64,000 nucleotides of DNA from Mobula birostris (lineage: Eukaryota): the NCBI RefSeq assembly GCF_030028105.1, contig NC_092377.1, positions 126,684,242 through 126,748,241 of the forward strand, given 5' to 3'. A program made the position numbers and the translations under genes. This document shows, piece after piece, positions 13,432 through 62,065 of the stretch. The notes under the pieces are model-generated. The model searched no databases. It was not told where the DNA came from and was given only the letters and a program-made list of their open reading frames with translations. The first letter of the stretch is position 1. Every line of letters begins with the position of its first letter.

Positions 13432-13463
13432 ATGCCTGTTACTGGAACGCAGGGTTTGATCAG
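13432..13463 (+). CDS. Gene A exon 1: leader part 1 (MPVTGTQGLI-R), phase 2
   Basis: ATG at 13432; donor AG|gtaaca; phase fits exon 2 and gives a continuous signal peptide. Confidence 0.6.
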
Positions 13464-13689
13464 GTAACATGAAGGGTAAATACCCGTACCTGGGGAGCAG
13501 TAAAGCTGTACGTATGGAATTGATCAATCTCAGTTCTCCCTGTCTGCTGAACAGTACTTATTGGGTATGTGGTTGCCAGACCTACCCCTGCCTCCGAGCA
13601 TGTTCCCCTAGTAGGAGGGGAGGAGGAGAGAGCCGTGTCCCCGGAAGGCCAGCGTTATCTTGTCTACAAAGTGCCCCACATGTGATATT

Positions 13690-14560
13690 TGCCAGCTCTA
13701 CCTCAACAGCCTCTGTTCCAGCACCAGAGATCAATAGGATCCAGAGTTTCTGGTCAATTGGTCCATATCCCTGTTCATGGATATATCTAAGAGCCTTTTA
13801 AACACTCGTCATATCAAATACCACTGGCACATTCCAGGAATTCACCATGAATGAAAGCTTGCCTCGCACATCCTCTTTCAACCAACTTTATAGCTGCATT
13901 CCTCCTAGTGTTAGCCATTACAATCCCAAGGAAAAGATGGCGGCTGTCCATGCCTCTGGTAATGACATAAGATGTCCCCTCACTCTCAAACGCTCCACAA
14001 ACAACCCCATCAAACAGTGCAGCCACATTCTAGATCCCTCTGTACACCAATAATGTTAATGGTCTGGCCTTTAATCGTGCACTGTCCCGTTACATTTGAT
14101 CTCTCAAACTCCAACACCTCAACTTGCCAGGACTGGACTTCATCGACCATCATCTGCGAACACATTGACCCATACATCCAGCAGAAATCGCAGTACAGAA
14201 ACCTTGCAGAACAGCTCCAGTATTCCAACTGGAAGTCTTTGACACCTGATCAATCACTATCCTGTCTTCTAAATCCAAACGGCCAACTTCTGATTCACAG
14301 CCAACTCACTGTGGATCCACGTATCTTAATCTGGATGAGCTTCCCATCGGGGATGTTGTCAAAGACCTTGTAGACAACATCCATAGCTCGACCTTCATCA
14401 ATCACCCTCGTCACCTCATCAAAAAATTCAATCAAGTCAAAAGAATCACACGACTTACCCCACACAACAGCAGGCTGACTGACCCCAATTCAGCCATGGT
14501 TTTCCAATGAATACTAACCCAAAGGAACATTTAAGAGCAGACAGTTGGACAGTTTCAGCT
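13690..14560 (-). mobile_element. Old CR1 fragments in gene A intron 1
   Basis: Reverse frame WQVEVLEFERSNVTGQCTIKG resembles CR1 RT C-terminal motifs. Confidence 0.5.
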
Positions 14561-14632
14561 GTTCATGACTATCTGAGGTGGGATCAGATTCTGTGGAGTT
14601 CACTCCTCACTTCAACCTATCTTTCTCCTCAG

Positions 14633-14679
14633 GTCCATCGCAGTCTGTGTGTGGCTGTTCATGGTTGTAACGGCTGCTC
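14633..14679 (+). CDS. Gene A exon 2: leader part 2 (SIAVCVWLFMVVTAA), phase 2 to 1
   Basis: Acceptor ctttctcctcag|, donor |gtaagt; hydrophobic in this frame; homologous to gene B exon 62025-62065. Confidence 0.8.
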
Positions 14680-14972
14680 GTAAGTACAACATAGCATAGA
14701 GAGAGAATCAATCTGTGTCTGATCCCTGTGATAGGACAGTGTGCAGGGAACTGCATTTCATCAGACCCATGGAGTGGGCAATGGGACATTGCAGAGGGAG
14801 TTTCACCCTGTATCTGGTTCCAGTATGGTATTATGGGTCTGTAGGGAGAGGGAGAGATTCATTGTTTGTCTGACCCTGGGGCTGTGATGGGGCAGTGTAT
14901 AGGGAACCACTCTATGAAGGGGAGGATGATCTCCCTCTGAACCCACTGACCATGATACTCCTCTCCTGACAG

Positions 14973-15221
14973 GTGATCACGGCTTCTGTCAGTTCACTCC
15001 AAACACCATCTCCCTCAGCTGTCCCTGCACAATATCCTGGTCCCAGATCCTGTGGCTTCACAACCTCCGACAGTTCCAAGATAACTGTACCAGGGGAAAA
15101 GGCAACAAACTCCACTGTCAGATTGCCAGCCAGGCCAGGGTGGAAGCTGACAGAGTCACCCTGAACTACACCCGGGTTATCCCTGGCACCGTCTACTGTG
15201 AGATCTCCAGCAACACATCAG
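14973..15221 (+). CDS. Gene A exon 3: six-Cys Ig-like domain (83 codons, phase 1-1)
   Basis: Acceptor ctcctctcctgacag|, donor |gtaagt. Translates RDHGFCQFTPNTISLSCPCTISWSQILWLHN...VTLNYTRVIPGTVYCEISSNTS with B-strand Cys, C-strand Trp and F-strand YC; paralogous exon in gene B. Confidence 0.85.
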
Positions 15222-16144
15222 GTAAGTGCTGATGGGAGAGGGAGTAGTATGAGGGTCTGATACTCCAGACTGCCACCATTCCGATGTTTATTCTCTCCGT
15301 GCCATTAGAGCGAGATTCCGGTTTCTAGATTTAGAACAGTACAACACACGAACAGGCACTTTGGCCCAAAGTACTTGGTCAAATCGATTAAACCAGTAAT
15401 TAACTCAAAACTAAATAACTCTCTTCTGCCTGCCCGATGGCCACGTGGCTCTGGTCTCTGCCCGATGGTCCATATCCCTGCCCAGTCACATCGGCTTCTA
15501 AAAGGTTCCTTCACGCCTTAATCATATTAGAAATCAGAATTGGTTTATTGTGTCATGTGTACCGAGATAGTGAAAAGCTTGTCTTGCAAACTGTTCATAC
15601 AGATCAGATCACTACACAATAGAACAAGGTTAAATAATGACAGGAAGCAGAAAAACGTGTAACGGCAACAGAGAAAGTGCAGTGTAGGTAAACGATAAGG
15701 TGATTGATGATAATCTATCTATCATGATGAGGGACATGGATGGGGTGAATACACATAGCCTTTCTCCCAAGGTTATGCAGAGTTTTAAGCAGCATCTTCA
15801 CCCAGAAGAAGGTCCATACCTGGAATGAGCAGCCAGAAGTGTTTGTTGCCGGTTACAATAACAACGTTTAAAAGTCACTCAGAAAGGTACATGATGGGAA
15901 AGGTTTCAGAATGAATACAAGTCAATGGGACTGGCTCTGTTGGTTTGTCCCCAAAGGGCATGTTTCTATGGTGTGTGATTGTGACACTGAGTCCTGGGAC
16001 AGACCAGCTCTGTGGGACAGGCTCACCCCTTGCTCCCTTTGCACCGAGCTCACCGCTCCTCCCCACAGGACTCATCCGACCTCGGAGAAGCGCGGATCGA
16101 GGGACAGCAGCTCGGCCCTGAGGTGTACCTGCTGTGTTTTGCAG

Positions 16145-16291
16145 GTGTTGAGGATCCTACCCAGAGGACACAAGTAGACCAGTTGTCTGTCCCACCACAG
16201 ATAACATCTCAGACGCCAGTGTCCACTGAGACAGACGGAAGACAGGTGCAGGACAGAATTACGAGTGCACATGAGAAGATAGCAATTGCAG
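16145..16291 (+). CDS. Gene A exon 4: Ser/Thr/Pro-rich stalk (49 codons, phase 1-1)
   Basis: Acceptor tgtgttttgcag|, donor |gtgaat; VEDPTQRTQVDQLSVPPQIT aligns with gene B stalk PRQMTVVDQVISPPEAIT. Confidence 0.8.
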
Positions 16292-17157
16292 GTGAATTTC
16301 CACAGATTTAACACTTTCGGAATGGTGAAATTCCTCATCATAATTCCAAAGTAACTTCCCTTTATCCCATCACAAACAAGAGAAAAGCTGCAGATGCTGG
16401 ATATCCAAGCAGTGCACACAAAATGTTGGAGGAACTCGGCAGGCCAGACACCACCAATGGAAAAGAGTATGTCATTCAGGATGGAGGATCTCGGCCTGAA
16501 ACGTTGACTGTTTACTCTTTTCCGTAAATGTTGCCGGGCCTGCTGAGCTTCTCCAGCATTTTGTGTGTGTCCTTTATCCTGTTGCTGTTTCCTCGGATTC
16601 TGATGGAAATGTCCTCCTTGTGTCCACTCTATCCAGGACTTTCTGTATCCAGGAGGCTTCAATGAGACCCCCTTCCTTCATCATTCAGAACTCCCAGGAA
16701 CATCAAACACTTCTCAGGAGTTATTGTGAACTTCTGGACTGACCCCCAAATGGCACCTTTCATTCAAAGTAACTAGAAACACATTGACCAACACAATATT
16801 CCAAATGCAGCCTCACCAACGTCTTGTACAACTGCAACATAATGTTCCAGCTTCTATACTCAGTGACTTGACTGATGGAAGCCAGTGTGCCAAACACCTT
16901 CTTCATCATCCTGTCTACTGGTGACACCATGTTTACAGAACCCTGTACTTGTGATTTAGAAAGGGGATGGAGAGATACAAAAGGCAGTGAAGATGGGGAG
17001 TAAGTGGGACTATGGGATGGATGGATGTACAGCCGGGATGGGTGTGGATGGTGATGCAGCCATGGGAGTGGGGAGGAGGATGGGTATCAGAGTTTCCCAT
17101 ATCATTCCAGTATGTTTCTGGTCAAACCAGTGTAATTGTGACATTTCCATTCTACAG

Positions 17158-17203
17158 GGGTGGTGGGAGTCAGCGTGCTGGTGGTCCTGGTTGTCGTTCT
17201 GTG
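17158..17203 (+). CDS. Gene A exon 5: transmembrane (GVVGVSVLVVLVVVL), phase 1 to 2
   Basis: Acceptor ttccattctacag|, donor TG|gtaagt; uncharged hydrophobic stretch. Confidence 0.85.
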
Positions 17204-17365
17204 GTAAGTAACCTTGTTGCTTCCTGGGGTAGCCTAGTGTTCAGTTCTCTCAACTGCAGCATCCTCGCTCACCGTCCCTCCGGTGCCCCACCTCGCTCAC
17301 CGTCTCCATGACCCATCTCTGTCGCTCAGTGAACAGAATCTCAGTGACCTTCCCCTCTGTTGTAG

Positions 17366-17558
17366 CTCCAGGAGACAACATCATAAAATGTGTCCAAGAT
17401 TGTTGGCCCGGATGGAGATGCAGAGGGTGCCAATGCACAGGGAGATCCCACTATCAGCAATGTTGGTACCTCAAGCATCATGTCCATCAGGTCTCCCCTC
17501 AGCCTCCGACACTCCAGAGGAATCTGCTTCAACCCATCCAATCCTTCCACGTGACTAA
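17366..17558 (+). CDS. Gene A exon 6: cytoplasmic tail (CSRRQHHKMCPRLLARM...PILPRD*)
   Basis: Acceptor ccttcccctctgttgtag|; phase 2 join gives basic residues right after the TM. Total CDS is 714 nt (237 aa). Confidence 0.72.
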
Positions 17559-17749
17559 AGCCCCCACCACCCGATCCTGACAACATCACAGTGTATCTCC
17601 TCGGCTCTCCCTCCAATGCGAGCCCAGCCTTCCTGTATTGCAGTCAGCTGAAAACACAGTGATTGAAGTGCAGTCTGACCAGTATCTTGTCAAGTTCTAA
17701 CATAACATCCTAACTTTTACATTGCATACCTTGATCCCAGGGGTCTCTG

Positions 17750-20700
17750 TAATTGTATCCCACGGACTCTCTGTTCCACACCTCCAGTGCCCCATCATTT
17801 ATTGTGGATGCTCTTCCTGAATTTGACTTGCCGGAATACATCACCTTGTCCTCAGTTGTATCAAACTCCATCTGCCTCTCTCTGCCCAACTTTCCACCCG
17901 ATCTGAATCCAAGCCAACCTTGTCAATTCTTACAGTTACCTCTTTAAAAAAACTTGTGGAGGGGAGGAATTCCCCTGTGCAAGGATGAGCTGAAAGGCCT
18001 GTATTTGTGCTGTATATTTCTGTGACATTCCAGGCCAACCTATTCCGGGTTAGAATTGACGATTGGTTGTCTCCCAGGTGTCCAATTGTATGGGGGGTGG
18101 GGGAGAAATGCTGGACCCCTGGGTGTACGTGCATCCCTGGGTCATCTATGTAAATCCTGGCATTGGACTGTGTATACCAAGCACAGGCATTTCACACAGT
18201 TCAAAATCTCATGCGACTAATTCCTGCCTTTCCCACACCTCTGGGAATGATGACGTCTGCTTTCTAGGATGTGAACACCAACTATCCATCCCTGCTGTAA
18301 GAGGGATCAGTGTGGTAAATATTAATTTTAGTTATCTTGCATTTATGACAACATATTGTTATATTGAAGTGTTCAGCCCAGAGTGAGGGAGTGGGGGATG
18401 GAGATTGGAAATGTAATCTGGAAATGATGGAAACACTCAGCTGGTCAGACACATCTGTGGGGGGAGACATGGAGTTAACATTTCCATTTGGAAACACTGC
18501 TCCTGTTGCCAGCATCATGAAAGACACCTTTCAGCCTGGTAATTCTCTTGTACAATTAAGGTGAATTCTTGAAAAACTTCCTCGCCTTCCACAACACCAC
18601 CAGCTTGCCTTAACTGCAAACCTGCCAATTATCCCTGCAACCTTTACAACTCACACATTTGGTACCCTGTGGTAAACCACAGGTCAGACATCAGTCAGAA
18701 ATGTATCTTCCCTCCACTACTTTTGATCTCTGATCACCAGCCAATGTTGGATCCAATTATCTGGCTCATCTTGGACTTCAAGTGCCTTCCAGACCAGTCC
18801 TCCATATCAAAGATCTTACTAAAGTGTATGTAGATAACATCTACCTCACTGCCCTTATCAATCCTTTTACCACCTTAAAAAAACTCAGGCAAATTAGATT
18901 GACAGGATGAGCTACAAAGATGAGCTGAAGTGCCTGTATCTCGAAAATTCCGTGACTTTCCCAGCCAAAAGCCAGTCGGATCCATGGTTGTCCCTTGTAA
19001 ATAGCACATCTCCCAGGATGTGCCATGTACAATTTTCTCTCTAATTTTTAGTAGTCAGTGTGTGCAAAAATCTTATGTTGTGCAAATTTTTTTCCTGTGA
19101 CAAAAGTATGTGTGCACTGAATGCACACATGGCACAGTTTATGTAGGTTTACTGAATATTTGACATAAAACGGCACAGAATAACAACAAAATCACATACG
19201 TATTTAAGTCACTCAGTTATTTTTTTCTCTCTCCTGTCTTTGGCATTTACCCATTCTTTGTAAATTCTATCAAGACTGATGGAAATTCTATCCAATTGAT
19301 AGCTTTTGACTCTCATTAACATACCCAAATGACATTCCCTAAACGGTTTCTCAGCTTTTTGAGTTGATTCATTAAGCTAAAACTTCGCCCACAGTCCGCG
19401 CTAGATGCAAGAAAGGTTCCCCCAACATGTACCAACTGTGCAAGGTCGCAAAACTGTTCATTTTGAAGTCCAAATGTCACCATTTGAGCAAAGTTTGAAA
19501 TCAGTTTGGATTTAATTTTTTCTTGCATGGAAAATTTGAAGTCATTAAACTGTCTAACTATTACAGTATTTTCAGCTGGTAAATCCCAATATTTTATACA
19601 TAAGGCATTAACTTGTTCATTGCTGAATGTGAAGTCACAATCTGCAATTGCAGAGAAATCAAAAGCTGACCATTCTTGTACTTCACCTTCAGGAAACCTG
19701 TCTTCTAAATGAGCACAAAGACAATTTATAGAAGTCAACAGCGAACTTGTATCTACTGTGGCATTTTCTTCATGTTGTTCGCTTAGCAAAACTCTAACTT
19801 TGTCACTCCACAAAACATTGTCCCCTAGATACCGCTTTCTTATCTTGTTAATTTTGCCTCTGTCTTTAAGAACTTTGATCTCCTCTGGGTTGGATGGTTT
19901 TTGCTCTCGCTCATCTGTACTCAACCATAACACGCGTAGCACTCCTGTAACAGGTTCTGTTTCTCGTAGCTGAACGTTCATGACCTCATGAGCTTTCGGT
20001 GTAGCAATTTCTACTATTAAGCCATTCAACTTTTTAAAAAATTGCAGTTCTTTTGCACTTCACACACTTCACTTCTTTTGAATTCGACATAGTGAAATAA
20101 TTTTTTGTCAATAAGAACTTAGTAAGCTATCCGCAGGATTTGAAACAGATCTTTGTAAGCTTTACGATATAAACACTGTCCACCAAACATGGCTGCCAAC
20201 GTGATGCAGCTGTACAAACCGGAACAGGAAAGGTGAGGTGACGTAAATTTGTGAGGTGCATTGTGGTATTTGAAAAAGCGACTAACTAGTTAACAGAAAC
20301 AGTGAGCTAAAAGATTATTTTTAATAAGTATAATTATTCATTACTACATTATTTTAGGTAACTAAACTTTTGTGTGCACATTAATTTCCTTTGTGCGCTG
20401 GTTGAAAAACGTGTGCATGCACAGCTTAGAGGAAACATAGGCCATGTGTAAGGGAATCTGCTGACCCCTGGGTGAGCATACACCTCTGTGTCAGCTCTGC
20501 AAGCCCAGGGGTGGGATTTGCACACAGTCCGGGATCTCCTGGATCTCCTGCCTCTTTCCCAAATCTGTGGGAATGATGAAGGTAGTTTTCTGGGATGTGA
20601 ACAGAAGCTACTCCTGGTGTGAGAGGGATCAGTGTTATGAATATTAATTTTAATATTTATGGTTATAAAATATTCTTGTATTTATGACAATACATTATTA

Positions 20701-24050: not shown

Positions 24051-26999
24051 TCCACGATGAGTGAGTGTCCTCAGTCTCCGGTACCTCCTCCCTCACAGCA
24101 GTAATGAGAAGAGGGTGTGGTGAGCAAAGCGACTTAGACCATAAGACAGAGGAACCAATTTGGCCATTTGGTCCATCATGTCTGCTCCGCCATTTGATGG
24201 TGGTTGATCCATTTCCCTCTCAACTCCATTTACTTGCCTTCTTCCCATAACCTTTCATGCCCTGACTCATCAATAAACTATGAACCTCCGCCTTAAATAC
24301 ACCCCGGTGTCTACAGCCACATGCGGCAATAAATTTCACAGACTCATCATGCCATGGCTAAAGAAATTCCTCCAGACCTCCTTTAAAAATGAGCAGCTAA
24401 GGGTGTGTCCTCTGGTCCCAGACTCCCTCACTGCAGGAACCATCCTCTCCACATCCACTCTATCTGGGCCTTTCAACATTCGATAGAACTCAATGAGATC
24501 CCCCCTCATTCTTCTAAATTCCATCGAGTACATGACCAGAGCCGTCAAATGCTCCTCCTAAGATAAGCCTTTACTTACAGGAATAATTATCATGATCCAT
24601 CTCCAATGTCAGCACATCTCAGATTTTTGAATTCTCTCCCCATTTAGAAAATAGTAATTTCTTTGCCCATTCTGTGAATCAGTGCAGGTCTTCTGCAGTC
24701 ACCCTGCTTCCTCAGTTCTATCTGCACATCATTGATATCTTCATCTTCATATCACTGGCAAACTAGGGCACAAAATCACCAATTCCATCATCCAAATTAT
24801 TGACTAGCCGGAGACTCTGGTTTCTAGACTTAGAACAGTACAGCACAGGAATAGGCACTTTGGCCCAAAATACTTCAAATTGATTGAACCAGTAATGAAA
24901 CCCATAACTGAACGGATCCCTCCTGAATGCACATGGTCCAAATCCCTCCATTCTCTGCACAATCACATCGGTTTCCAAGAACTTCCTGAAGATCTTAATC
25001 ATATTAGAAATCAGAATTGGTTTATTGTGTCATGTGTACCGAGATAGTGAAAAGCTTGTCTTGCAAACTGTTCATACAGATCAGATCACTACACAATAGA
25101 ACAAGGTAAAATAATGACAGGAAGCAGAAATAAGTGTAGCAGCAACAGTGAGAGTGCAGTGCAGGTAAACGATAAAGTGCAGGATCATAATGAGACCCAG
25201 ACAATCTACTGCACTGAGGAACCACACAACAGTCTGAGAAGAGAAGGGCAGAAGCTGTCTTTGAGTCTGGTGGTACGTCTGTCAGATTTCTGTGTCTCTG
25301 ACTTATGGGAGGGGATGGAAAGGGACTGTTTGGGGTGGCTGGAATCTTTAACACAAGCGATTCAGCAGATACTGGAAACCCAGAGCAATTCTCACAGAAT
25401 GCCAAAGGAAGTCAGCAAGTCAGGTGTCATCTGTAAATCATTAAACAGTTGAAGTTTCGGTACTTTCACAGGACTGAAAGGGAAGAGGAAAGAACTAAAT
25501 GGTCGGGGGGGGGAGCGGGAGAGGAGGACTAGACAGAGGTGAGGGATGAAGGCCGGTGTTTGGGAAATGGAAGGGGCTGGGGAAGAGGGAAACTGTTGCG
25601 AATGGAGAATGGATCATGGGAGAAAGGGAAGAAAGGCATGTGGGTGAGGTGAGAGGCAGATCAGGTGAAGAGGTAGAGACCAGAGTGGGGAATAGAGGGA
25701 TCTGTCATTTGTCTGTACAGCTGTCGAGCAGCCAGCATAATCAGTCCATGGATGGGAGGATGGTTTCTGTGATATGTCGAGCTGTGTCTACAGATTACTA
25801 CAGTTTCATGTGATCCTGTACAGAGCATCTGCCGTACCAAATGTGAAAGGTATGTACAGGATGTTTTCAGTGATGTCTTAATAATAGATTGGTAAGGGTC
25901 AACGGAGTAATTCATTTTGCCTCCTGAGGAAGTAAATGCTCCCACCAGCACCACAACTTGGTTCATTGCTAAGTGCAGTCTTTGTAGTCCCATATGCCAG
26001 GTGTTCTTTGTCTTCATACTTCATGGCTTATGGGAAGGTTGGCCCAGGAATAATGTTGTGGGGCGTCTACGCGCAGTGAGATCTCACTATCAGTAGAGGA
26101 CGGGAGGGTCAGCCTTATCCCACTCAACAGAAATCAGGACCCATCCGACCCTAGGCATTCTCTCCTCTCCCACCTCCTGTCAGGCAGAATATACAAACAT
26201 TTGAAATTCATCCGACTAGAATCAAGGACAACGCCTGTCCCACCAGCACCAAACCTCTCGGACCCAAAAAGATGAACTCGTGATCTGTGTCTTGGTACAT
26301 GTGACAATTGAAAGCCAGTTACCAATCCTCTGGAAACAGGCAGCAGACACAAGGTGCTTATTAAATGGCAAGGGGGGGTGGTATCTCTGATGGGGCAAAA
26401 ACAAGGTGCCTTTGGGGAGAAGATGCAGATGAGGTCACCAAGTGAATGGGAGCAGGTAGAAAGTGAGAACAGAGCCCCAGATTTACAAAACCCAGAAAGC
26501 CATAACGTAATTAAATTCAAAAGTCTGATGTCAAGCTAATCATTGTTGTCTCCCAGATTGTCACAGCAGCCACACCTCAGGTATAAATGTCACCAAAATA
26601 GCTTTTCCCAGCTGCAATACAGTATAGTAAGTTTGCATTCAACAAGTTAACTACAGTTGTTGGTTACTGTAAATAAGGAATCAGCCAATCATGTATCAGC
26701 AACTGAATGCATAAAGTTCAGAAGACTCAAGAGTTTGAGATGTTGTTTAGACCAGACATCAGAATGGGGAAGAGCAAAGTGGCAGCTGTGTGTAGTTTGC
26801 ATGCTCGCATTGAAACAAAATAAACACAACAGCTATTATATACAATTTCTTGTTAATTTTAAACCCACAAGTTCTTCAGAGCAACACTGACAAAAATGCT
26901 GGGCAAATCAACAAGACAGGCAACATCAATGGAGGGGAATAAACAGTCAACATTGAAGGTTTCACCCGGGATCCTTCATCAGGATATTAATTTTAGTTT

Positions 27000-29109: not shown

Positions 29110-32100
29110 CAGCACATAAACAGGGTTTTTGGTCCTTCTTGGCTACGCCGAACTATTTTTCTGCCTAGTCCCACTGAGCTGCACCTGGACCATATCCCCC
29201 CATACACCTCTCGTCCACGTACCTGTCCAAGTTTTTCTGAAATGTTAAAAGTGATCCCGTATTTACCACTTCATCTGGCAGCTCATTCCATACTCCCACC
29301 ACTCTCTGTGTGAAGAAGCCCCCCCCCAATGTTCCCTTTAAACTTTCCCCCCTTCACCCTTAACCCATTTCCTCTGTTTTTTTCCTCCCCTAGCCTCAGT
29401 GGAAAAAGCCTGCTTGCATTCACTCTATCTATACTCATCATAATTTTATATACCTCTATCAAATTTCCCCTCAAGTTGCTCAAGTCCCGGCAACATCCTT
29501 GTAAACCTCCTCTGCACTCTTTCAACCTAATTAATATCCTTCCTGTAATTTGGTGACCAAAACTGAACACAATACTCGAGGTTTGGCCTTACCAATGCCT
29601 TATACAACCTCGTCATAACATAACATTCCAACTCTTATACTCAATACCTTGATTAATAAAGGCCAATGTACCAAAAGCTCTCTTTAGGACTCTATCTACC
29701 TGTGATGCCACTTTTAGGGAATTTTGTATCTGTATTCCCAGATCCCTCTGTTCTACTGCACTCCTCAGTGCCCTACCATTTACCTTGTACGTTCTACCTT
29801 GGTTTCTCCTTCCAAAGTGCAATACCTCACACTTGTCTGTATTAAACTCCATCTCCCATGTTTCAGACCATTTTCCAGCTGGTCCAAATCCCTCCACAAA
29901 CTTTGAAAACCTTCCTCACTGTCCACTACACCACCAATCTTTCTATCATCAGCGAATTTGCTGATCCAATTTACCAATCATCCACATCATTGAGATAGAT
30001 GACAAATAACAATGGACCCAGCACTGATCCCTGTGGCACACCACAAGTTACAGGCCTCCACTCAGAGAAACAATCCTCCACTACCACTCTCTGGCTTAAT
30101 CCATTGAGCCAATGTCTAATCCAATTTACTACCTCTCCATGTATACCCAGTGACTGAATCTTCCTAACTAACGTCCCATGCGGGACCTTGTCAAAGGCCT
30201 TACTGAAGTCCATGTAGACAACATCCACTGCCTTCCCTTCATTCACTTTCCTAGTAACCTCCTTGAAAAACTCCAATAGATTGGTTAAACATGGCGTACC
30301 ATGCACAAAGCCATGTTAACTCTCCCTAATAAGTCCCTGTCTATCCAACTACTTGTAGATCTTATCTCTTAGTACTCCTTCCAATAATTTACCTACTACC
30401 GACGTCAAACTTACTGGCGTATAATTTCCCAGATTACCTTTAGAGCCTTTTCTAAATAACGGAACAACATGAGCTATCCTCCAATCCTTCGGCACCTCAC
30501 CCGTAGATACCGATATTTTAAATATATCTGCCAGGGCTCCTGCAATTTCAACACTAGTCTCCTTCAAGGTCCGAAGGAATACTCTGTCAGGTCCTGGGGA
30601 TTTATCTACTCTGATTTGCCTCAAGATAGCAAACACCTCCTCCTCCTCAATCTGTATAGGTTCCATGACCTCACTACTTGTTTGCCTTATTTCCATTGAC
30701 TCCATGCCAGTTTCCTTAGTAAATACAGACACAAAAAACCCATTTAAGATCTCCCCCATTTCTTTTGGTTCCATAGATAGCCGACCACTCTGATCATCAA
30801 GAGGACAAACTTTATCCCTTACTATCCTTTTGCTCTTAATATACCTGTAGAAGCTCTTTGGATTATCCTTCACCTTGACTGCCATAGCATCCTCATGTCT
30901 TCTTTTAGCCCTCCTGATTTCTTTCTTAAGTTTTTTATTGCACTTTCTATACTCCTCAAGCACCTTATTTACTCCCTGTTTCCTATACATGTCATACATC
31001 GCTCTCTCCTTCTTTATCAGAGCTCCAATATCACTTGAGAACCAAGGTTCCTTATTCTTATTCACTTTGCCTTTAATCCTGACAGGAACATACAAACTCT
31101 GCACTCTCAAAATTTCTCCTTTGAAGGCCTCCCACTTACCAATCACATCCTTGGCAGAGAACAACCTGTCCTAATCCACGCTTTTTTGATCCTTTCCCAT
31201 TTCTTCAAACTTGGCCTTTTTCCAGTTTAGAACCCCAACCCGAGGCCCAGATCTATCTTTATCCATGATCAAGTTGAAACTAATGGTGAAATTAATTGAT
31301 CGTTGGAACCAAAGTGTTCCCCTACACACACTTCTGTCACCTGTCCTAAATCATTTCCAAATAGGAGATCTAATATTGTATCCTCTCTAGTTGGTACCTT
31401 TATATATTGATTTAGAAAACTTTCCTGAACAGATTTTACAAACTCTAACTCATCTAGACCTTTAATAGTATGGGAATCCCAATCAATATGTGGAAAATTA
31501 AAATCCCCTACTATCACAACTTGATGTTTCCTGCAGTTGACTGCTATCTCTCTGCAGATTTGCTCCTCCAATTCTCGTTGACTATTGGGTGGTCTATAAT
31601 ACAACCCCATTAATGTGGTCATACCTTTCCTGTTTCTCAGCTCCACCCATATGGCCTCGGTAGACAAACCCTCTAATCTGTTCTGCCTGAGCACTGCTGT
31701 ACCATTTTCCCTGACTAGCAATGCCACCCCCCACCCCTCATTCCTCTGGCTCTCTCACGTCTGAAACATCGGAATCCTGGAACATTAAGCTGCCAGTCCT
31801 GCCCCTCCTGAAGCCAAGTTTCACTAATGGCTATAATGTCGTAATTCCATGTGCCAATCCATGCCCTCAGCTCGTCAGCCTTTCCCACAATACTCCTCGC
31901 ATTGAAATAGACACACCTCAGAAGGTTATTACCGACACACACAACCCTTCTATTTGTGACTTTGCATGAATTTTTAACGTCATTTATATTCACCCCCGCT
32001 CCACTATCTGCTCTGGCACTCTGGTTCCCATTCCCCTGCAAATCTAGTTTAAACCTACCCCAAAAGCAGTAACAAACCTCCCTGCAAGGATATTGGTCCC

Positions 32101-32450
32101 CTTATAGTTCAGGTGTAACCCGTCTCTCTTGTACAGGTCCCACCTACCCCAGAAGAGGTCCCAATGATCCTGAAATCTGAAACCCTGCCACCTACACCAG
32201 TTCCTCAGCCACGTATTCATCTGCCAGAGCATCCTATTCTTACCCTCACTGGCAGGTGGCATAGGTAGCAATCCTGAGATTACCACCCACGAGGTCCTGC
32301 TTTTCAACTTCCTACCAAGCTCTATACTCACTCTTCAGGACCTCCTCACTCTTTCTTCTTATGTCATTGGTACCGATGTGTACCATGACATCTGGCTGAT
32401 CACCCTCCCGCTTCAGCATGTTGTGCACGCGATCGAAGACATCCCAGCTG
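29110..32450 (-). mobile_element. CR1 LINE, large decayed copy (ORF1 esterase, APE endonuclease, RT)
   Basis: ORF1 WGRWDLYKRDGLHLN; APE YFNARSIVGKADEL, IVGDFNFPHIDW; RT YMDFSKAFDKVPH, GVPQGSVLGPLLF, SKFADD. Confidence 0.93.
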
Positions 32451-39473: not shown

Positions 39474-40318
39474 AGAAAATGACCGAAAGATTCTGTGTCT
39501 GTGTGGCCCGTTCCCCATAGAGTGACAGTATGCATGAAGGGTCGGAGTGTTGGGAAGAATTTCCGTCGTTTCGGGGTGAAGGAGTTAGGCTGTCAATGTA
39601 GAGAAGAAGAAGAAGGGGTGTGTGTTGTTGACAGGGGAGTGTCATGGATTCGGGAAAGGTCATTGGTTACGGGGAGAGGTGCTGGTTGATATTGAGCAGA
39701 GGTTGCCTGACTTTGAGCTGTTTTGGACGCCGCATCCGGGTCACTCTCTGCACCGCTCCGCTCCCTCCCGGTGATACAGACGCTCCCTCACCACACTTGT
39801 CTCTATCTTCCCCAACTCTTACCATTATCACTGGTTGTAACGTGGTCTGATGGAAAATTCTCCCCACGTGCCCAAAGATTTACCTGTATTTACACCCTTC
39901 AATATCCCTTTAAAACTCTAACATAACTCATACCCCAGAACTCTCCCTGATGGGTCACTGTTTGATACCTGGACAAACGCCTCGCCTTCCCCACACAAAC
40001 TTGTATTAATCACGATCTACTCTCCAGGCTGGAGACTTGTACTCATTCAACTTTCTCAAATCGGTTCCACTCCGGGTTAACACCATGTTGTCTGGCAGAC
40101 TTCCTTTTTATTTAGCACATACCAAGGACGAATCATGTTTAACTCTTTCCTTACAATTTGAGATCACTCCACGTTTACTCTCTGCCCCTCCCAACCTCTA
40201 CCCTCGCTACTCTCTCCCTATCTCCTTGTGTTACAGACGCGCCCTCTCCACTCTCTCTCTGTACCACTCTCCATGTGTTACGGACGCTCCCTCACTATTC
40301 TCTCTCACTGTGTTACAG

Positions 40319-40678
40319 ACAGCTCCCTCGCCACCCTCTCCGTGTCCCAGTGGCCTCGGAGGTTGGAGGTCCCGAGTGGCTCCAACGTGACGCTGCACTG
40401 CGAAGTTCTGGGGCTGACGGAGCCCCGGGTGATAATCTACCCCTATTGGGTGATCGGCGGGACGGAGGAGGGGGAAGAAGAACGTGTCGTCTACCCGCCC
40501 CCACAAGAAACCCGGCGGGAAGACGCCCTACCTGAGAGTGAGATCGGCACGGGACTCTCCCTCCAACTCCGGCACCTCCGCCCGAGCCACTCCAACACCT
40601 ACCGCTGCCTGGCGTCCGTTCACCTTCCCGACCGGCGGCTGCTGCTCCGAGGGAACGGGACCGTGCTCCTGGTACGAG
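40319..40678 (+). CDS. VJ-type receptor V exon 1 (NKp30/NCR3- or XMIV-like IgV)
   Basis: 360-nt phase 1-1 exon: VSQ...VTLHC...YW...LSLQLRHLRPSHSNTYRC...GNGTVLLVR, with a germline J-like GxGTxLxV motif; donor G|gtgagt. Confidence 0.9.
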
Positions 40679-41854
40679 GTGAGTCTCCGGTCCCACTACC
40701 CTTGTTCCCCACTAGCTGCCCCCAGATTCCCGCTTCCCTCCTGGGATCCGATCCCATATCATGTTCAGTTTTAATATATATAATTTTCCTGACTTGCTGG
40801 GTTAGATCCCAGTCTCTAACCGGCTCACGAGTAGTGTATCTGTGTATCTTTGGATAAATTGTGTAAGTCTGAGGGGATGAGGGAGCTGGAGAATTGTTGT
40901 AGGAGAGAGGGAGGAGGGGACGCCTGAGGAGGAGAAGGAAATGTCATGGATACGGGTGGAATGGGAGGAGGGATATGGGGAGAAGTGGGAGGGTTAGGCA
41001 GAGTTTGCCCGATTTGGGGCTGTGTTTGCGTAACGATAATTGTTTAAAATGTCGTTCTGTGGTCTTTCCTGATGCAGCAATAAGCATTCCGGTCTATATT
41101 TGCACACAAAGGGGACAACTGTACACATGTTAAACGACAATAAATTGTTTTACTAGGGTTATATAAACATGCAATGCAAAAAGGAAAACGAAGGGTTAAT
41201 GATGTCGCCAAAAACAAACACTTCTCGTCCACTGAACGAACTGATCTGCAGATGCCGGAAGGAATCACAGATACCACAAACTTTCAGTTCTTTCCCTCTC
41301 TCTCTCACTGGACGTAATTGTCTCTATCTTCGCCAACTCTTAAACCATTATCACTGGTCGTAACGTGGTCTGATGGAAAATTCTCCCCACTTGCACAAAG
41401 AAAACCCGTATCTACACCCTTCAATATCCCTTTAAAACTCTAACAGAACTCATACCCCAGAACTCTCCCTGATGGGTCACTGTTTGGTACCTGAAAAAAG
41501 GCCTCGCCTTCCCCACACAAACTTGTTTTAATCCATGATCTACTCTCCAGGCTGGAGACTTGTACTCATTCAACTTCCTCAAATCAGTTCCACTCCGGGT
41601 TAACACCATGTTCTCTGGCCGACTTCCTTTTTATTTTGGCACATACCAAAGACGAATCATGTTTAACTCTTTCCTTAGAGTTTGAGATCACTCCACGTTT
41701 AATCTCTGCCCCTCCCATCCTCTTTCTCTGTACAGACGCTCCTTCACTACTCCCTCCCTCCCTGTGTTTCAGACCCTCCCTCACTACTCTCTCCACTTCT
41801 CTCCATGTGTTACAGACGCTCCCTCAACATTCTCCCTCTCTCACTGTGTTACAG

Positions 41855-42214
41855 ACATCTCGCTCGCCACCCTCTACGTGTCCCAGTGGCCTCGGAGGTT
41901 GGAGGTCCCGAGTGGCTCCAACGTGACGCTGCACTGCGAAGTTCTGGGGCTGACGGAGCCCCGGGTGATAATCTACCCCTATTGGGTGGTCGGCGGGACA
42001 GAGAACGAGGGAGAGGAACGTATCGTCTATCCGACTCCCGAGGGATCCCGGCAGCAAGATGCTCTACCTGAGAGCGAGATCGGCACGGGACTCTCCCTCC
42101 AACTCCGGCACCTCCGACCGAGCCACTCCAACACCTACCGCTGCCTGGCGTCCGTTCATCTTACCGACCGGCGGCTGCTGCTCCGAGGGAATGGGACCGT
42201 GCTCCTGGTACGAG
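41855..42214 (+). CDS. VJ-type receptor V exon 2 (tandem duplicate)
   Basis: 360-nt phase 1-1 exon, 14 aa different from V1; intact splice sites. Confidence 0.9.
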
Positions 42215-42466
42215 GTGAGTCGCCGGTATCTCTCCCCTCGTTCACTTTTCACCGCCGCTTACATGATTCCTCCTGGGATTGGATCGCAGGTCCAGTTTTG
42301 TTATTTCATATATAACCCCTCCCCCAGAACGCTTGGATTAGATCCCAGCCTGTAACCCACTCCCAGCAATGTTATTCTCTATATAAACCCCTGAAACCTC
42401 AGAATACATCCCATCCTTAGTTCGCCTCGGTGAACCGTCTCACTCTGAACTCCGATTTACTCTCAG

Positions 42467-46015: not shown

Positions 46016-46018
46016 TAA

Positions 46019-53480: not shown

Positions 53481-53789
53481 CTCCCCTCATCTTTTGTTCC
53501 CCATTCAAGCCCTTAACCTCTTCCCACCTGCCTATCACCTCCCGTTGTATTCCTCCTCTTTCTGCAATGGTCCACACTCCACTCCGATCAGATTCCTTCA
53601 TCTCCAGCCCTGTACATTTCCCACCCAGCTGGGTTCACCTAACCTCTTCCGGCTATCTCCCCTCCCCTGCCCCAACTTTTTATTCTGGCCTCTCCCTCCT
53701 TCTTTTGCAATCGTGTAAAAGGTCTTGGCCCGAAACCCCGACTGTTTGTTCATCTCCATGGATGCTGCCTGACCAGCTGAGTTAGAGTC

Positions 53790-55900: not shown

Positions 55901-57869
55901 TATTCTGACGGGCACGTCAAGCTTTGTACTCTCAAACAACATACACAAAATGCTGGAGGAACGCAGCAGGCCAGGCAGCATCAATATTTCAGGCCGAGAT
56001 CCTTCAGTAGGATGGGAAAAAAAACTGAGGAGTAGATTTGAAAGGTGGGGGAGGGGAGCAAGAACACAAGGTGAAAGGTGAACCTGAAGGGGGAGGGATG
56101 AAGTTAAGAGCTGGGAAGTTGATCGGTGAAAGAGATAGAGGCCTGGAGAAGGTGGGAGTCTGATGGAAGAGGACAGAAGACCATGGAAGAAAGAAAAGGG
56201 GGGAGGTGATGGGTGAGAGAGGGAAAAGGCCTCACGAGTTCCTCCAACACTTTGTGTGTTGCTTGGATTTCCAGCATCTGCAGATTTTCTCTTGTTTGTG
56301 ATTGTACTCTCAGATTTTCACTTTTGAAGGTGTCCTACTTACCAACTACATCTTCTTTCAGCAGTTTGTGTATGCTGCAATGAAAAGTTGTCTTCTGAAT
56401 TTAACAGCATTGTGGGAGCTTGTTGGTGTGTGGGGCTCTGAGGATGTTGGGTGTTTGTGACACAGTGACATATGTTCTCCTGTCAACATACTGAGAGCCC
56501 TTGTCTGCACCTTGCCCACATGGGCACTGTGCTTTTTCCCCATCAGGGACGCCCCCCAACACACAGAGCCGTTTGATAAGTACCTTGGTCTGCTGCCCAG
56601 TTCTGGTTTACTATTTTCACAGATGTACCGAGATACAGTGAAAAGCTTTGCTTTATGTTTCATCCCGACAGATCATTGCACACGTCAGTATGGTGAGGTA
56701 GTACCGAGATAAAACAAGGACACAATTCAGAATAAAGCGTTAATTAGAAAGTGCAGTGCAGGGAAATGATAAGGTGCAAGATCACAGCCAGTTATTTGAT
56801 CTTTATTGTAAATCAGACTCGTGTCAGCTGGTGAGAAGTTGACTTATGCCTGATGGGTGGGAGTTTGAGTTCAAGCTCAAGTTAAGGTTTACTGTCATTC
56901 AACTGTTAGATGTAAACCACCAAATGAAACAAAATTCCTCCAGACCAGGGTGTACACACATAACACAGAGTAATATTACCACAGATATTCACAAGTTCAA
57001 AGGTACAATTTAATGTCAGAAATGTATACAATATACATCCTGAAATGCCTTTTCTTCGCAACCATCCATGAAAACAGAGAAGCGCCCCAAAGAATGAATG
57101 ACAGTTAAATGTTAGAACCCCAAAGGTCCCCCCTGGCTCCCCGGTCCCCCACGTGTAAGCAGCAGCGAGCAACAATCCCCCCTCCCCTACTGGCAAAAAC
57201 AAAGCACACCCACTACCAGCACTCAAGCGTGAGCAAAGCAATAGCAAAGACACAGACTTGCAGTTACCCCAAAGACTACACTGTTCACCCGATAGTTTGA
57301 CACGCTGCAGGCTCTCTCTCTCCTAATAAGGGAGAAAGAGGTGAGTCCATTTTCCAATGAGTGAGAGAGATAACAAACAACTCGCTGGATTATGATGTTA
57401 AAAGTCCGTTATGTCGCTTTTTCCGAGCTCTATACCTGGAGATTAAATGGATCCCAGGTGTACAGCAGATGTTCCGACTCCCTCAATGACACACGGATCT
57501 TTTGTGGTGACACTGACCCTTGACTTGCGCGACTCCAATCAATCGAGAACCTAGGCTTCTGAAATTGTGTCAAATCATAGGCTGAGACCACGGCATGCCG
57601 AATAGCGGCTGATCGTGGAACCTCGAGAGTGGGTCCCATTCCCACAAAGAACCATAGTCAGGGTCTTCAAAGGAACCCTGAAAGGGAAATATAGAGATAT
57701 TAATGATGGAAATAGGACTGCTTCCGAAGATGCAAGCAAAAGAGTTGCTGTTGGGCGCCATCATCCACTTAGCTCTGCCTCCGATTATTTTATTTTATCA
57801 GATATTAAAATATATTCCAGTGGACTGCTAATCTAACTCCTTTCAGGCAGTCCATGCTGTTAATCAGTT

Positions 57870-57951
57870 CTAACTGTGTGTAGACGTTCCCTGGGGATCA
57901 ATCCAGGCCAACGTTCTCACCAGTCTCACATTGTGATGTCACTTCGGGTAT
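57870..57951 (-). pseudogene. Gene B homolog of exon 6, with stops in the homologous frame
   Basis: Acceptor gtgaccttcctttctgttctacttgcag| resembles gene A intron 5. The split codon TG|A is a stop, followed by YPK*HHNVRLVRTLAWID (gene A: SRRQHHKMCPRLLARME). Confidence 0.65.
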
Positions 57952-58263
57952 CTGCAAGTAGAACAGAAAGGAAGGTCACAGAATCACAGAGGCAAAGGGT
58001 TGGAGGCAGTCAAAGAGGGGTGTAGCAGATGGAGGGAAGAGTCAGAGACTGGGAAGGGTTAGGGGAGATATTGGGTTACAGAGATTGGGAGGAGTCTAGG
58101 GACTGGAGGTGGTTACAGAAATGGGAGGAGCCTAGGGGCCAGAGTTGGGGGGTGGTCACAGAGATGGGTTGACGGGGTGTAGGGACTAGAAGAACTGAGA
58201 GGGGTGCAGGGGAAGCCACAGTTGTGGTTCAGAGTTTTCCCAGGAAGGGACGAAGTCACTTAC

Positions 58264-58312
58264 CATTGAATGAGAACCACAGCAACAAGCACGATGACTA
58301 CCACAGTCACTG
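58264..58312 (-). CDS. Gene B transmembrane exon (AVTVVVIVLVAVVLIQ), phase 1 to 2
   Basis: Acceptor catttccgttcag|, donor TG|gtaagt; same phases as gene A exon 5. Confidence 0.82.
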
Positions 58313-59227: not shown

Positions 59228-59383
59228 CTGGAGCTGCAATCCACCCAGCCACACTTGTAGTTCCACCCTGCACATCTCCTCCGCCCAATCCATTCCTCCA
59301 GGCATGCTCTGGCTCCAAAGTTATCGCTTCCGGTGGGCTAATCACTTGGTCCACCACAGTCATCTGTCTGGGGCACTCCCAGT
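59228..59383 (-). CDS. Gene B stalk exon (52 codons, phase 1-1)
   Basis: Acceptor tgtgctttgcag|, donor |gtgagg; aligns with the gene A stalk. Confidence 0.78.
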
Positions 59384-61046
59384 CTGCAAAGCACAGGGGT
59401 TCTGTCTTAGTTCTGAGATGCTCTCTGTAAATCCGCACTCTCCAGAGGTCGGTAAATGGTTGGTGAACTTAGGGCCATGGGAGCACCATTCAAGCTTGCT
59501 CCGGAGCTCAGAGATACAGTCACACAGCAAGCAAACAGGTCCAGCTAGACAAGATGCTCATCTAAGCCAATCCCATATCCCTCCAAGCCTTTCTTATCCA
59601 TGTACCTGTTGAACTATCTTTTAAGTGTAATGTATCTGCCTGAGCCACTTCCTCTGGAAGCTTGTTCCACATATGAACTACCCTCTGGGTGTAAAGATTT
59701 CCACTTGGATTCATAGTAAATCTTCCTTATCTTGCCTTAAATCATGCCCTCTAATTCTTGATTTTGCAACCTTAGGGAAAAAACCATGCGTCTTCACCCT
59801 ACCCATGGCCCTCATGATTTTATACACCTCCTTAAGGTCAACCCAGTCTCCTGTCCTCCGCTGAATAAGGACCTAACCTGCCCACCCATCTCCATAACTC
59901 AGAATGGTGTCCTGACAACAGACACGTGATGCTCCTCTGTACTCTTTCCACTCAATGACATGTTCCCTATAGCAAGGTGACCAAAACTGAACACAATCGT
60001 CCAAGTGCCACCTTACCAATGTCTTGTGGAAGTCCCATGTTCTCTCGTGTCCCAATTTCCATGGGTGTCAATCCCTACTACAAACCCCCTCCACACAATC
60101 TTCCTGACCTTTATGCCTTTCCCTCAGTAGTCCATCCTTCACATCCTCTGGGGCAGAGTATTGACAGTACCATCTTCCAGTAGAAATGACTGACCTTGAT
60201 CTTGTAATTCTCTCCCCTCGATTGAAATGATGACAGCCCTGCAGTAATCATTACACCACAGAGTTGTCCATTAACTATCCAATAACCTGCCATGCCGCTC
60301 AGCTGGAAGATGAGCTAATCTTCCAGACTTCTGGAAGTTATTCCAACTTAAACTCTCAACTCTTATTGGCTTGATTGTTACAAAGTACTAGAACACATTT
60401 TCCAGCAAAACAATTTACAGACATGCAGTTGCAATCTTTTTCTCAGAGACTTTACAACAAGTTTTGGCTCTCCAAGAAGTTTGATTCGTAGAGACTCGTA
60501 ATGAAATTACAAAAGCTAGTATCTTCTTGTTCCCAGGATTAAAGTGTACAAAGGGTGTGCATGTAAGGTGAAAGGGGGCAAATTCAAAGGAGATGTGCTG
60601 AGCCAGGTCTCCTTACAGGGATGCACCACAGCAAATTTCCAACACATGGAACAGTACACGGCAAATGAATTAGATTGTTGACCCACGAGTGCTGAGTGGC
60701 TCGATTGACCTGCCAAGGTGGTGGTGGAGACAGACGCAGCAGTCATTTGATAGGTTCTTAGACAGAAAGATGACTGTTCAGACAATGGAGGAATGTTGAT
60801 GTGATGTAGGGAGAAGGGACTATTCAAGTATGAACATATTAAATATATAGTCTAGCACTGCATATTGGGCTGAATGGCCTGTTCCCGTACTGTGCTGGCT
60901 CATGTTATATTTAGATCAGAACACAGGAAACCAGGTGCCCCTGCAAGGGATGTGTGGGGGAATATTGTCCAGACACCAAACAATGGGAAGAGTGGGATTC
61001 TGGAGTATCAAACCCTCATGGAACGTGCCTCTCCCCCAGCACCTAC

Positions 61047-61301
61047 TTGGAATGCCGAAGCCAATCTCACAGAAGTCAGTGTTGGGGATGTCACCCTGGT
61101 GATACTTCAGGATGACACAGTCAGCCACCATCCAACCCTGGCTGGAGTTTCGACAGCACAGTTCATCTTCCTCACCCCTGATGCAGACATCCGTGACAGA
61201 CAACTGGTGGTCCTTAAGGTACAGGCTCTCCCCAGCAGTCAGGACGCAGCGGCAGATGAGGGTACTATTGGCCTCATTGAAAGAGCAGGTGGCCCGTGGA
61301 A
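61047..61301 (-). CDS. Gene B Ig-like domain exon (85 codons, eight Cys)
   Basis: Acceptor ctcctctcccgacag|, donor |gtaggt; VPRATCSFNEANSTLICRC...DVCIRG...LCC...ADCVILKY...IPNTDFCEI shares all six Cys of gene A. Confidence 0.85.
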
Positions 61302-61419
61302 CTGTCGGGAGAGGAGTGTTCGCAGTCAGTGGGGTCGGGGGTGGGGGGGGGTCATCATCCTCACCTCCCCACCTTCATTGCCCTACCATCCCATCACACA
61401 CTCTCAGGGACAGATACAG

Positions 61420-61980
61420 AGTGAAACTTCCTACACAGTGTCCCATCACACACTACTGGTGTCAGACACAGAGTGAAGGTCCCTCCACACTGTCCAATCA
61501 CACACTCCTGGTGTCAGACACAAAGTGAATCCCCCTTCACACCGTCCCATCACACACTCCCAGGTTCAGATACAGGATGAAGTTCCCTCCACCCACAGTC
61601 CCATCACATACTCCTGGTGTCAGACACAGAGTGAAGCTCCCTCCACACTGTCCCATCACATACTCCTGGGGAAGACACTGAGTGAAGCTCCCTCCACCAT
61701 GTCCCATCACACACTCCTGGGGAAGACACTGAATGAAGCTCCCTCCACACCATCCCATCACATACTCCTGGTGTCAGACACAGAGTGAAGCTCCCTCCAC
61801 ACTGTCCCATCATATACCTCCAGATCCAGGCACAGAGTCAAGTTCCCTCCCACTCCATTCCATCACACGCTTCCTGGGACAGAAACAGGGTGAAACTCAC
61901 TCAGCACCTTCTCATCACAAACTTCTGGATTTGGCCACAGAGTTAATTGTTCTCCACACTGTGCCATCACACACACACAG
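61420..61980. repeat. ~52-bp minisatellite in gene B intron 2; decayed equivalent at ~14700-14920 in gene A intron 2
   Basis: Unit ccatcacacactcctggtgtcagacacagagtgaagctccctccacactgtc, about ten copies. Confidence 0.88.
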
Positions 61981-62024
61981 GATCAGACATTGTCTGAAGT
62001 TCCTTCTGGACAGGATGTACTTAC

Positions 62025-62065
62025 CAGGAGTAGATCTGCCCATGATCATACAGACTATGATACAC
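62025..62065 (-). CDS. Gene B leader part 2 (CIIVCMIMGRSTP), phase 2 to 1; ATG exon not found in the window
   Basis: Acceptor tttatttttcctcag|, donor |gtaagt; IxVC shared with gene A exon 2. Confidence 0.78.

Follow-up and report, generated by a model that had tools for sequence, protein, structure and literature searches.

Structure of genes A and B

The 64,000-nucleotide stretch of Mobula birostris DNA described here (contig NC_092377.1, positions 126,684,242 to 126,748,241; hereafter the window) is vertebrate DNA that holds multi-exon genes and open reading frames (ORFs) of retroelements. Two of the genes, A on the forward strand and B on the reverse strand, had been described from the letters alone (the original prediction) as convergent paralogs of a candidate receptor family with a six-cysteine immunoglobulin (Ig)-like domain, referred to below as the head. 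Splice-site testing on the sequence resolved gene A (13432-17558) into six exons, all bounded by GT-AG sites, with an open frame of 237 amino acids (Table 1). The predicted protein is type I, with a signal peptide, a head that carries three N-glycosylation sequons, an uncharged transmembrane (TM) helix and a 64-residue tail devoid of tyrosine. For the stalk exon of gene A, preference was given to the phase-1 donor at 16291, as the aligned exon end (IAIAG versus IAAPG) and the exon length match those of B and the orthologs; a phase-0 donor at 16245 was dropped, since 16291 keeps phase 1 and fits B as well as the orthologs.

A second long frame at 17233-17697 (+) overlaps the tail exon of gene A and is opened by skipping of the 46-nt TM exon (…GDNIIKCVQDCWPGWRCRGCQCTG…). 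This frame is 76% identical over 114 amino acids to isoform X1 of M. hypostoma (P0010) and has a stop in the window at 17578-17580, where M. hypostoma reads on. The TM-skipped frame could encode a secreted isoform with a cysteine-rich tail.

The 3' end of gene B differs from that originally proposed, in which splicing of the TM exon to 57951 creates a stop codon (TG+A) and the model hangs on one acceptor. The Hemitrygon ortholog P0002 reads on past the TM segment with '…KNRTTVLCLNGTRSRGSTICHYSACRGL…', and positions 57677-57575 of the window encode 'VPLKTLTMVLCGNGTHSRGSTISRYSACRGLSL' followed by a stop, a peptide homologous to the tails of both P0002 and P0011. Because this segment combines a phase-fitting acceptor with homology to the ortholog tail, it is probably the last coding exon of gene B, and the end at 57951, probably wrong, was dropped as the main 3' end. 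A candidate first exon of gene B matches exon 1 of paralog P0011 in length, would bring back the arginine found family-wide at this junction and would imply a 1.2-kb intron, as in gene A; it falls within a block that is colinear with the Hemitrygon ortholog.

Table 1. Exons of genes A and B and associated minisatellites, in window positions.
Feature	Position	Strand	Remarks
Gene A exon 1	13432-13463	+	Putative; ATG plus 10 codons, phase-2 donor GT; peptide like N-termini of orthologs (MAVCAVLQLDTF-R)
Gene A leader exon 2	14633-14679	+	Hydrophobic core of signal peptide; phase 2-1; 56-82% identity in tblastn with family proteins
Gene A minisatellite, degenerate	14699-14916	+	About 4 decayed 52-bp units in intron before domain exon; same limits by unit search
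Gene A six-cysteine domain (head) exon	14973-15221	+	83 codons, phase 1-1; family hidden Markov model (HMM) E down to 2e-34
Gene A stalk exon	16145-16291	+	Phase 1-1; predicted disordered, model confidence (pLDDT) below 50
Gene A TM exon	17158-17203	+	Phase 1-2, no charged residue; 67% nucleotide identity to TM region of B
Gene A cytoplasmic tail exon	17366-17558	+	About 64 amino acids, no Tyr, ends TAA; 57-80% identical to A-type tails of Hemitrygon and Hypanus
Gene B exon 1	63241-63269	-	Candidate from ORF and donor scan; MRSAFQVAS plus 2 nt, phase-2 donor GTAAAC
Gene B leader exon 2	62025-62065	-	Phase 2-1
Gene B minisatellite	61389-61974	-	52-bp unit x 11.2 (Tandem Repeats Finder, TRF) in intron before domain exon; 61389-62006 by unit search
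Gene B domain (head) exon	61047-61301	-	85 codons, phase 1-1, 8 Cys; 64% identical to Hemitrygon P0002
Gene B stalk exon	59228-59383	-	Phase 1-1; stalk Cys (WECPRQ); 60% identical to P0002
Gene B TM exon	58264-58312	-	Phase 1-2
Gene B probable last coding exon	57575-57677	-	W-VPLKTLTMVLCGNGTHSRGSTISRYSACRGLSL-stop, 34-residue tail; phase-fitting acceptor AG at 57679/78

Paralogy and inherited exon plan

The relationship of A to B was evident from both protein and gene structure. Thus, the domain exons share 26 identities in 76 positions (34%, E 1e-11; roughly 30% by eye in the original prediction), and the cysteine pattern quoted there is present, except that the domain exon of B holds eight cysteines rather than six; six are common to both heads, and the same six are invariant across the family described below. 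The claim of common exon phases was borne out by the GT-AG models, which give 2-1 for leader 2, 1-1 for the domain, 1-1 for the stalk and 1-2 for the TM exon of each gene. Alignment and blastn likewise recovered the stalk motif (DPTQRTQVDQLSVPP in one gene, CPRQMTVVDQVISPP in the other), the aligned end of the stalk exon and the minisatellite of intron 2; nucleotide similarity between the genes was noted by blastn in the TM exon and its upstream intron and in the repeat of the pre-head intron.

Both genes follow the plan leader 1, leader 2 (2-1), head (1-1), stalk (1-1), TM (1-2) and tail. Head, stalk and tail exons occur in the same order at loci of Pristis, Hypanus and Hemitrygon, and the head and stalk exons of Hypanus (249 and 150 nt) are nearly the size of those of gene A. 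The minisatellite units of gene A fall below the TRF threshold and were detected by their match to the array of B (blastn E 5e-12) and by a unit search, the strict 52-bp unit being found within the window in the intron of B only. At every locus a 52-bp-unit repeat was located between leader 2 and the head exon (Hypanus, 12579-14348; Hemitrygon, 10044-10453; Pristis, 17579-17896; each in the numbering of its own locus), and the surrounding 24-32 kb had it at no other place. Its retention in place since before the sawfish/stingray split may hint at a role in regulation, splicing or exon-targeted gene conversion.

A family of unnamed batoid proteins

A profile of the A and B heads, searched against 1.84 billion representative proteins, retrieved 11 related clusters with E values from 2e-34 to 1e-11 and one additional match that proved to be a spurious repeat protein. 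When 5.8 billion proteins were searched as well, at E ≤ 0.01 and at E ≤ 10, the added members all came from species already represented, namely Mobula birostris, M. hypostoma, Hemitrygon akajei and Hypanus sabinus (Myliobatiformes) and the sawfish Pristis pectinata. The entries include LOC132385339/341/355 of Hypanus sabinus, LOC134350231 and LOC134350892 of Mobula hypostoma, XP_072123318 of Mobula birostris, XP_072911376, XP_072925635 and others of Hemitrygon akajei and LOC127587166 of Pristis pectinata. All are computer predictions that NCBI lists as 'uncharacterized protein', with no name, no precomputed Pfam domain and no publication, and they differ in no essential way from A and B, having the same six-cysteine head, stalk motif, TM segment, tails, exon plan and minisatellite-bearing intron. 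Among proteins of sharks, skates, chimaeras and other vertebrates no family match was found, a result that covers annotated proteins only and so is no proof of absence. Literature searches for a described batoid family of this kind found no paper. As originally proposed, then, A and B belong to no named family, the profile search having returned strong matches among unnamed batoid proteins only; in databases the family is present only in the form of unnamed predictions.

Six cysteines are invariant in 15 sequences (C-x10-C-x-C ... D-x-C-x-R-G ... L-x-C ... [YF]-C-E-I). Most members add a second cysteine beside the fifth (CC) and another in the stalk (ECPRQ). B carries both the extra head cysteine and the stalk cysteine and A carries neither; A-type members usually lack both, with the exception of M. 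hypostoma P0004, which keeps the stalk cysteine. The A-type tail is conserved between species and is rich in proline, serine and acidic residues (…EIPLSA[VM]L[IV]PQA…SGLPSASDTPEESA…); a search for its motif in other proteins returned family members only. The B-type tail is short.

In a maximum-likelihood tree the members form three groups: an A-type clade (support 100/100) that unites window A with members from Mobula, Hemitrygon and Hypanus, a B-type clade (support 95/90) that unites window B with Hemitrygon P0002 and P0011, and an intermediate, eight-cysteine group that includes the Pristis gene. As A and B fall in different, well-supported clades, each with its own Hemitrygon orthologs, their duplication predates the mobulid/dasyatid split, which agrees with the old duplication originally proposed; whether it also predates the sawfish split depends on the position of the root. 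In both stingrays, Hypanus (locus L002, 26430-26690) and Hemitrygon (locus L004), additional head exons and complete copies of the gene are arranged in tandem within 10-12 kb, so that the family is locally amplified. The A-type and B-type orthologs are 47 Mb apart on one Hemitrygon chromosome and 40 kb apart in the window.

Predicted fold of the head

The head was modeled with AlphaFold2 (AF2) from a 15-sequence alignment, which replaced a first run on a two-sequence alignment that was unstable and yielded one good model of five. All five models from the 15 sequences agree, with a mean predicted local distance difference test (pLDDT) score of about 73 overall, more than 90 in the head and less than 50 in the stalk. 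The modeled head is a beta-sandwich of nine strands, the last of which is YCEI, and pLDDT falls below 50 after about residue 95. The head exon ends 5-8 residues past the last cysteine and the AF2 model has no G strand (J-like G-x-G); since no strand follows YCEI, the domain is encoded in full by the head exon. Each of the nine predicted strands has a single counterpart in the series A, A', B, C, C', C'', D, E and F. Strands are better conserved than loops, and conservation alternates within strand C, which is what a sandwich should show. In protein A, C43/C45 and C102 occupy the predicted third and last strands at a distance of 57-59 residues, inside the 55-75 residues taken as the V-set spacing of B- and F-strand cysteines.

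Structural comparisons of the confident model returned mostly V domains at low scores. Foldseek against the PDB gave E values of 0.05 or more, with N-terminal barrels of ATPases first, followed by CTLA-4, CD28 and VHH domains; in a second look at the top 1000 matches, V domains (VHH/VH, CTLA-4) were found almost exclusively and made up about 45 of the 50 best. An aligner independent of Foldseek, for which Z scores below 7-8 are the noise range and those below 8 may reflect only a common arrangement, placed a phage tailspike domain first (Z 6.0), followed by a long run of V domains (Z 4.2-5.4). The V-domain alignments of the second look extend over 75-82 residues at about 3.1 Å and pair model residues 6-90 with chain residues 2-105, that is, strands A-F, with the superpositions on solved V domains (Z 4.8-5.4, Foldseek E ≥ 0.05) lying under the noise guides of both tools. 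No significant Foldseek match was found in AFDB clusters (searched with the two-sequence model), Swiss-Prot, a viral library or the Atlas, and an ESM-Atlas feature search gave weak Ig-flavoured matches (0.87-0.89) under the trust level of that tool.

Pfam searches with 12 members (E ≤ 1) and with 12 domain-only queries (E ≤ 10) returned no Ig family, whereas an exon of the V-set gene that lies between A and B, included as a positive control, scored 1.4e-7; the hhalign probability for the family against this neighbouring exon was 0.2, and PDB searches with single sequences and with the profile returned TM-helix noise only. Two of the Ig marks named in the original prediction did not hold, as the column proposed for the strand-C Trp ([WY]) is occupied by H, R, Y or W and the aromatic residue stands directly beside the last cysteine (Y-C), so that there is no YxC. 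Thus, the invariant strand-C Trp and the D-x-G/A-x-Y-x-C motif are absent, and the family motif is I-P-x-T-x-[YF]-C, with its aromatic residue at -1. The Ig assignment of the original prediction was therefore not confirmed: the model is a confident beta-sandwich, but its V-domain neighbours score low and Ig HMMs do not match.

From the model it is plausible that the head is a V-like sandwich without strand G, stabilised by extra disulfides, and Ig ancestry is likewise no more than plausible. Canonical V-set domains (PF07686), represented in the window by the exons between A and B, resemble the head in their phase 1-1 exon, in cysteines of the B and F strands (presumed strands in the head) and in their location in the same cluster, and differ from it in length (about 115 residues as opposed to 83) and in having the C-strand Trp, YxC and G strand that the head lacks, besides the hhalign probability already given. 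These differences, together with the ATPase barrels and the tailspike domain at the head of the match lists, Z scores that all lie under 7-8 and 12 members devoid of an Ig HMM match next to a V exon at 1e-7, would also be accounted for by a new small disulfide-rich beta-sandwich or barrel that is not Ig-derived and superposes on V domains only superficially. Such an origin is rather unlikely; against it stand the predominance of V domains in the second look (about 45 of 50, colinear over A-F), the one-to-one correspondence of the nine strands, the phase 1-1 exon and the location of the gene in a V-set receptor cluster.

A described family in disguise, either of the CD28/CTLA-4/ICOS type or related to the Ig-like proteins of adenovirus E3 CR1 or cytomegalovirus RL11, appears very improbable. 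CD28, CTLA-4 and ICOS are among the best structural neighbours (Z 4.4-5.0), are single-domain type I proteins like those of the ray family, have a membrane-proximal cysteine as do most ray members (in CD28 and CTLA-4 a stalk cysteine) and contain an extra intradomain disulfide in the C'-C''/D region, as predicted for the ray family. The ray family differs from these receptors, however, in the absence of any Ig HMM match, of a G strand and of an MYPPPY-type FG loop, in the CxC of strand B, in a leader encoded by two exons, in a stalk exon of its own and in tails that have no tyrosine motif such as YxxM (the A tail having no tyrosine at all). Direct comparison with CD28/CTLA-4 thus failed to place the family there, no proline-rich FG loop being present and the stalk cysteine being found in B and most members but not in A. 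The viral lead came from Adeno_E3 (PF06040), the only Pfam model to align over the whole head, which did so with the same part of its profile in one A-type and one B-type member (E 1.1e-3 for P0005 and 0.11 for P0002). Its best score was nevertheless 19.5 bits against a curated gathering cut-off of 25, only two of 10 domain-only queries matched, with no gain over the longer queries, and the viral structure library provided no significant match in support, so that this is a weak lead at most. The lack of any sequence match outside batoids among the 1.84 billion representatives argues against both versions.

Evolutionary rate and frame conservation

The locus of gene B is colinear over 6.3 kb with that of Hemitrygon P0002 (XP_072925635), and the locus of gene A is colinear with that of Hemitrygon P0015 (XP_072911376). 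In each comparison exons were more divergent than introns: 17.9% as opposed to 11.3% for B and Hemitrygon (Fisher p 9e-6), 17.4% as opposed to 11.4% for A and Hemitrygon (p 4e-5) and 13.5% as opposed to 7.7% for Hypanus and Hemitrygon (p 6e-4). Ratios of nonsynonymous to synonymous divergence (dN/dS) by the Nei-Gojobori method were 0.4-0.6 for the A head, 0.94 for the B head and greater than 1 for both stalks, and dN in the B head and in the stalks was nearly twice the intron distance.

Despite this divergence the reading frames are kept. The exons of B contain two indels, both multiples of three, as against 50 in the introns, of which 36 are not (probability of none in exons, 0.015), and in the TM exon of gene A indels of 2 and 1 nt compensate each other. 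The six cysteines and core positions are kept between A and B, at a distance at which synonymous sites are nearly saturated. Since exons change faster than introns while frame and cysteines are kept, these findings suggest diversifying selection on an expressed surface protein, and A and B may themselves be expressed.

RNA evidence

The check for spliced RNA proposed with the original prediction gave no support, as no spliced reads were seen for A or B in the RNA runs examined. In M. birostris RNA-type runs, 20-32% of the sampled words of 14600-17600 were present, and raised depth (13-95) was noted in the tail-exon bin 17334-17530, where A and its paralogs are not distinguishable. A contig of depth 42-201 covers 15006-15221 with nine differences and hence represents a 96% identical paralog; four of the nine are amino-acid changes found in M. 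birostris P0001/P0013 (N>T, G>D, K>E and G>R). The match of this contig to the window ends precisely at the predicted head donor (15221), beyond which the contig continues in phase into …SGSESPRQETVA, the stalk of P0020-type members, a sequence not present in the window. A close paralog is thus transcribed at a good level and spliced at the junction homologous to that of gene A.

In another contig, intron-3-like sequence (15807-15887) is connected to a stalk exon at 16162 by 16 letters encoding 'VECPR', with which the stalk of paralogs such as P0004 begins; its source is therefore the locus of a paralog or a transcript with a retained intron, and gene A is not the origin. Within intron 4 of gene A, the segment 16349-16742 has a word depth of 2,800-6,700 and is very highly represented in all four RNA runs, the other species included, which marks an abundant transcribed interspersed repeat.

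These results raise the question of whether A, B or both are young pseudogenes or neutral relics, the working members being elsewhere, for example the expressed P0001/P0020-like paralog. Such a state would be in keeping with exons no better conserved than introns, dN/dS of 0.94 in the B domain and of about 1 or more in stalks and tails, an odd number of cysteines in B, the absence of B from the listed runs and the representation of A by unspliced, low-depth contigs only. It is nonetheless considered unlikely. Every exon is open and every GT-AG site intact in both genes, the exons of B have suffered only three-nucleotide-multiple indels next to 36 frame-breaking ones in introns (P = 0.015), and six cysteines and a core have persisted from A to B in the face of near-saturated synonymous sites. 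Moreover, neutral decay does not predict exons that are significantly faster than introns, and simple decay is disfavoured because exons outrun introns while the cysteines are kept.

Other features of the window

The gene between A and B, called 'NKp30-like' in the original prediction, is a bona fide V-set receptor gene, so that the claim of a receptor gene alongside the two paralogs was correct. It is represented by two near-identical V-set exons at 40342-40692 and 41866-42216 (+), each with a Pfam V-set match of about 1e-7 and a J-like 'GNGTVLLV' end, the best PDB sequence matches of which are V domains of T-cell receptor alpha chains. Each exon is preceded by its own tandem repeat of 36-43 bp (40267-40345 and 41731-41856).

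An isolated homolog of the last exon of P0020-type members lies at 26182-26283 (+; …DNACPTSTKPLGPKKMNS-stop; 58% identity over 33 amino acids, E 3e-9), with no further P0020-type exon nearby; it could be what is left of a third gene of the family, or else an alternative 3' exon. Long retroelement ORFs, comprising reverse transcriptase of the long interspersed element (LINE) type and pol/integrase of the long terminal repeat (LTR) type, were found ahead of gene A as well as in the interval from A to B (5239-7128, -; 9636-12640, +; 29974-32101, -). A large compound tandem repeat at 2770-3590 (periods of 7, 35, 42 and 49 bp) contains a long open frame rich in proline, glutamine and serine.

Discussion

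The explanation that best accommodates these results, with a probability of about 0.6, is that A and B are both intact and represent two old subfamilies within a fast-evolving family of surface proteins that is, so far, known from batoids only. The observation on which the original prediction was built is confirmed, and its interpretation is supported in part.

The typical product would be a small type I membrane glycoprotein, its signal peptide split over two exons, with an all-beta head of about 83 residues held by three disulfides, a disordered stalk of about 50 residues, an uncharged TM helix and a tail specific to each subfamily. From the positions of the cysteines in the model, pairing would be C(A)-C(B), C(B)-C(F) and C(C')-C(C''). 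In most members, B among them though not A, the extra cysteines of head and stalk may form a bond with one another or may link two chains into a dimer in the manner of CD28 and CTLA-4. A glycosylated recognition head would in this way be held off the membrane on a flexible stalk.

Several points weigh against this explanation. Neither a significant fold match nor an Ig HMM match was obtained for the head, and the hhalign probability was 0.2. The A-type tail has no ITAM or ITIM (immunoreceptor tyrosine-based activation or inhibition motif), no YxxM and no other recognised signalling motif. The absence of the family from sharks and skates concerns annotated proteins. Pairwise dN/dS of about 0.4-1.0, and above 1 in stalks, is by itself also expected of a decaying gene, and gene conversion among paralogs, the main alternative cause of fast exons, could have produced the rate difference. 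Words of gene B were next to absent from the RNA-type runs listed, and RNA contigs on 13000-18900 yielded, for gene A, low-depth unspliced pieces and repeats with no spliced RNA.

With regard to function, the best guess for these surface proteins is a recognition molecule of immune cells, either receptor or ligand, or a decoy targeted by pathogens, given the rapid evolution of the gene and its place in a cluster of V-set receptors. That the protein and the products of the adjacent NKp30/CD28H-like genes are ligand and receptor to each other is speculation, though open to test. A broader proposal, put forward tentatively and as well short of an even chance, is that the family is an invention restricted to batoids. 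Its head of 83 residues, V-derived or wholly new, would then combine three disulfides with the loss or lack of a G strand, exons that diverge about 1.6 times as fast as introns would record an arms race, and a minisatellite would have been kept in front of the head exon in all loci examined.

Among lineages with antibody-based immunity the cartilaginous fishes are the oldest, and clusters of non-rearranging receptors in these fishes are searched for clues to the origin and diversification of V domains. To these the present family adds a confidently modeled domain that lies at the edge of the Ig fold or outside it and that combines a CxC in strand B with the lack of both G strand and Trp, as well as a minisatellite fixed at one intronic position through many duplications and speciations. 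Exons that outrun their introns mark the family as a likely target of host-pathogen or receptor-ligand co-evolution. It thus offers a new marker for ray immunology and a test case for minimal Ig-like folds, and it illustrates that coherent receptor families can hide among predicted proteins listed as 'uncharacterized'.

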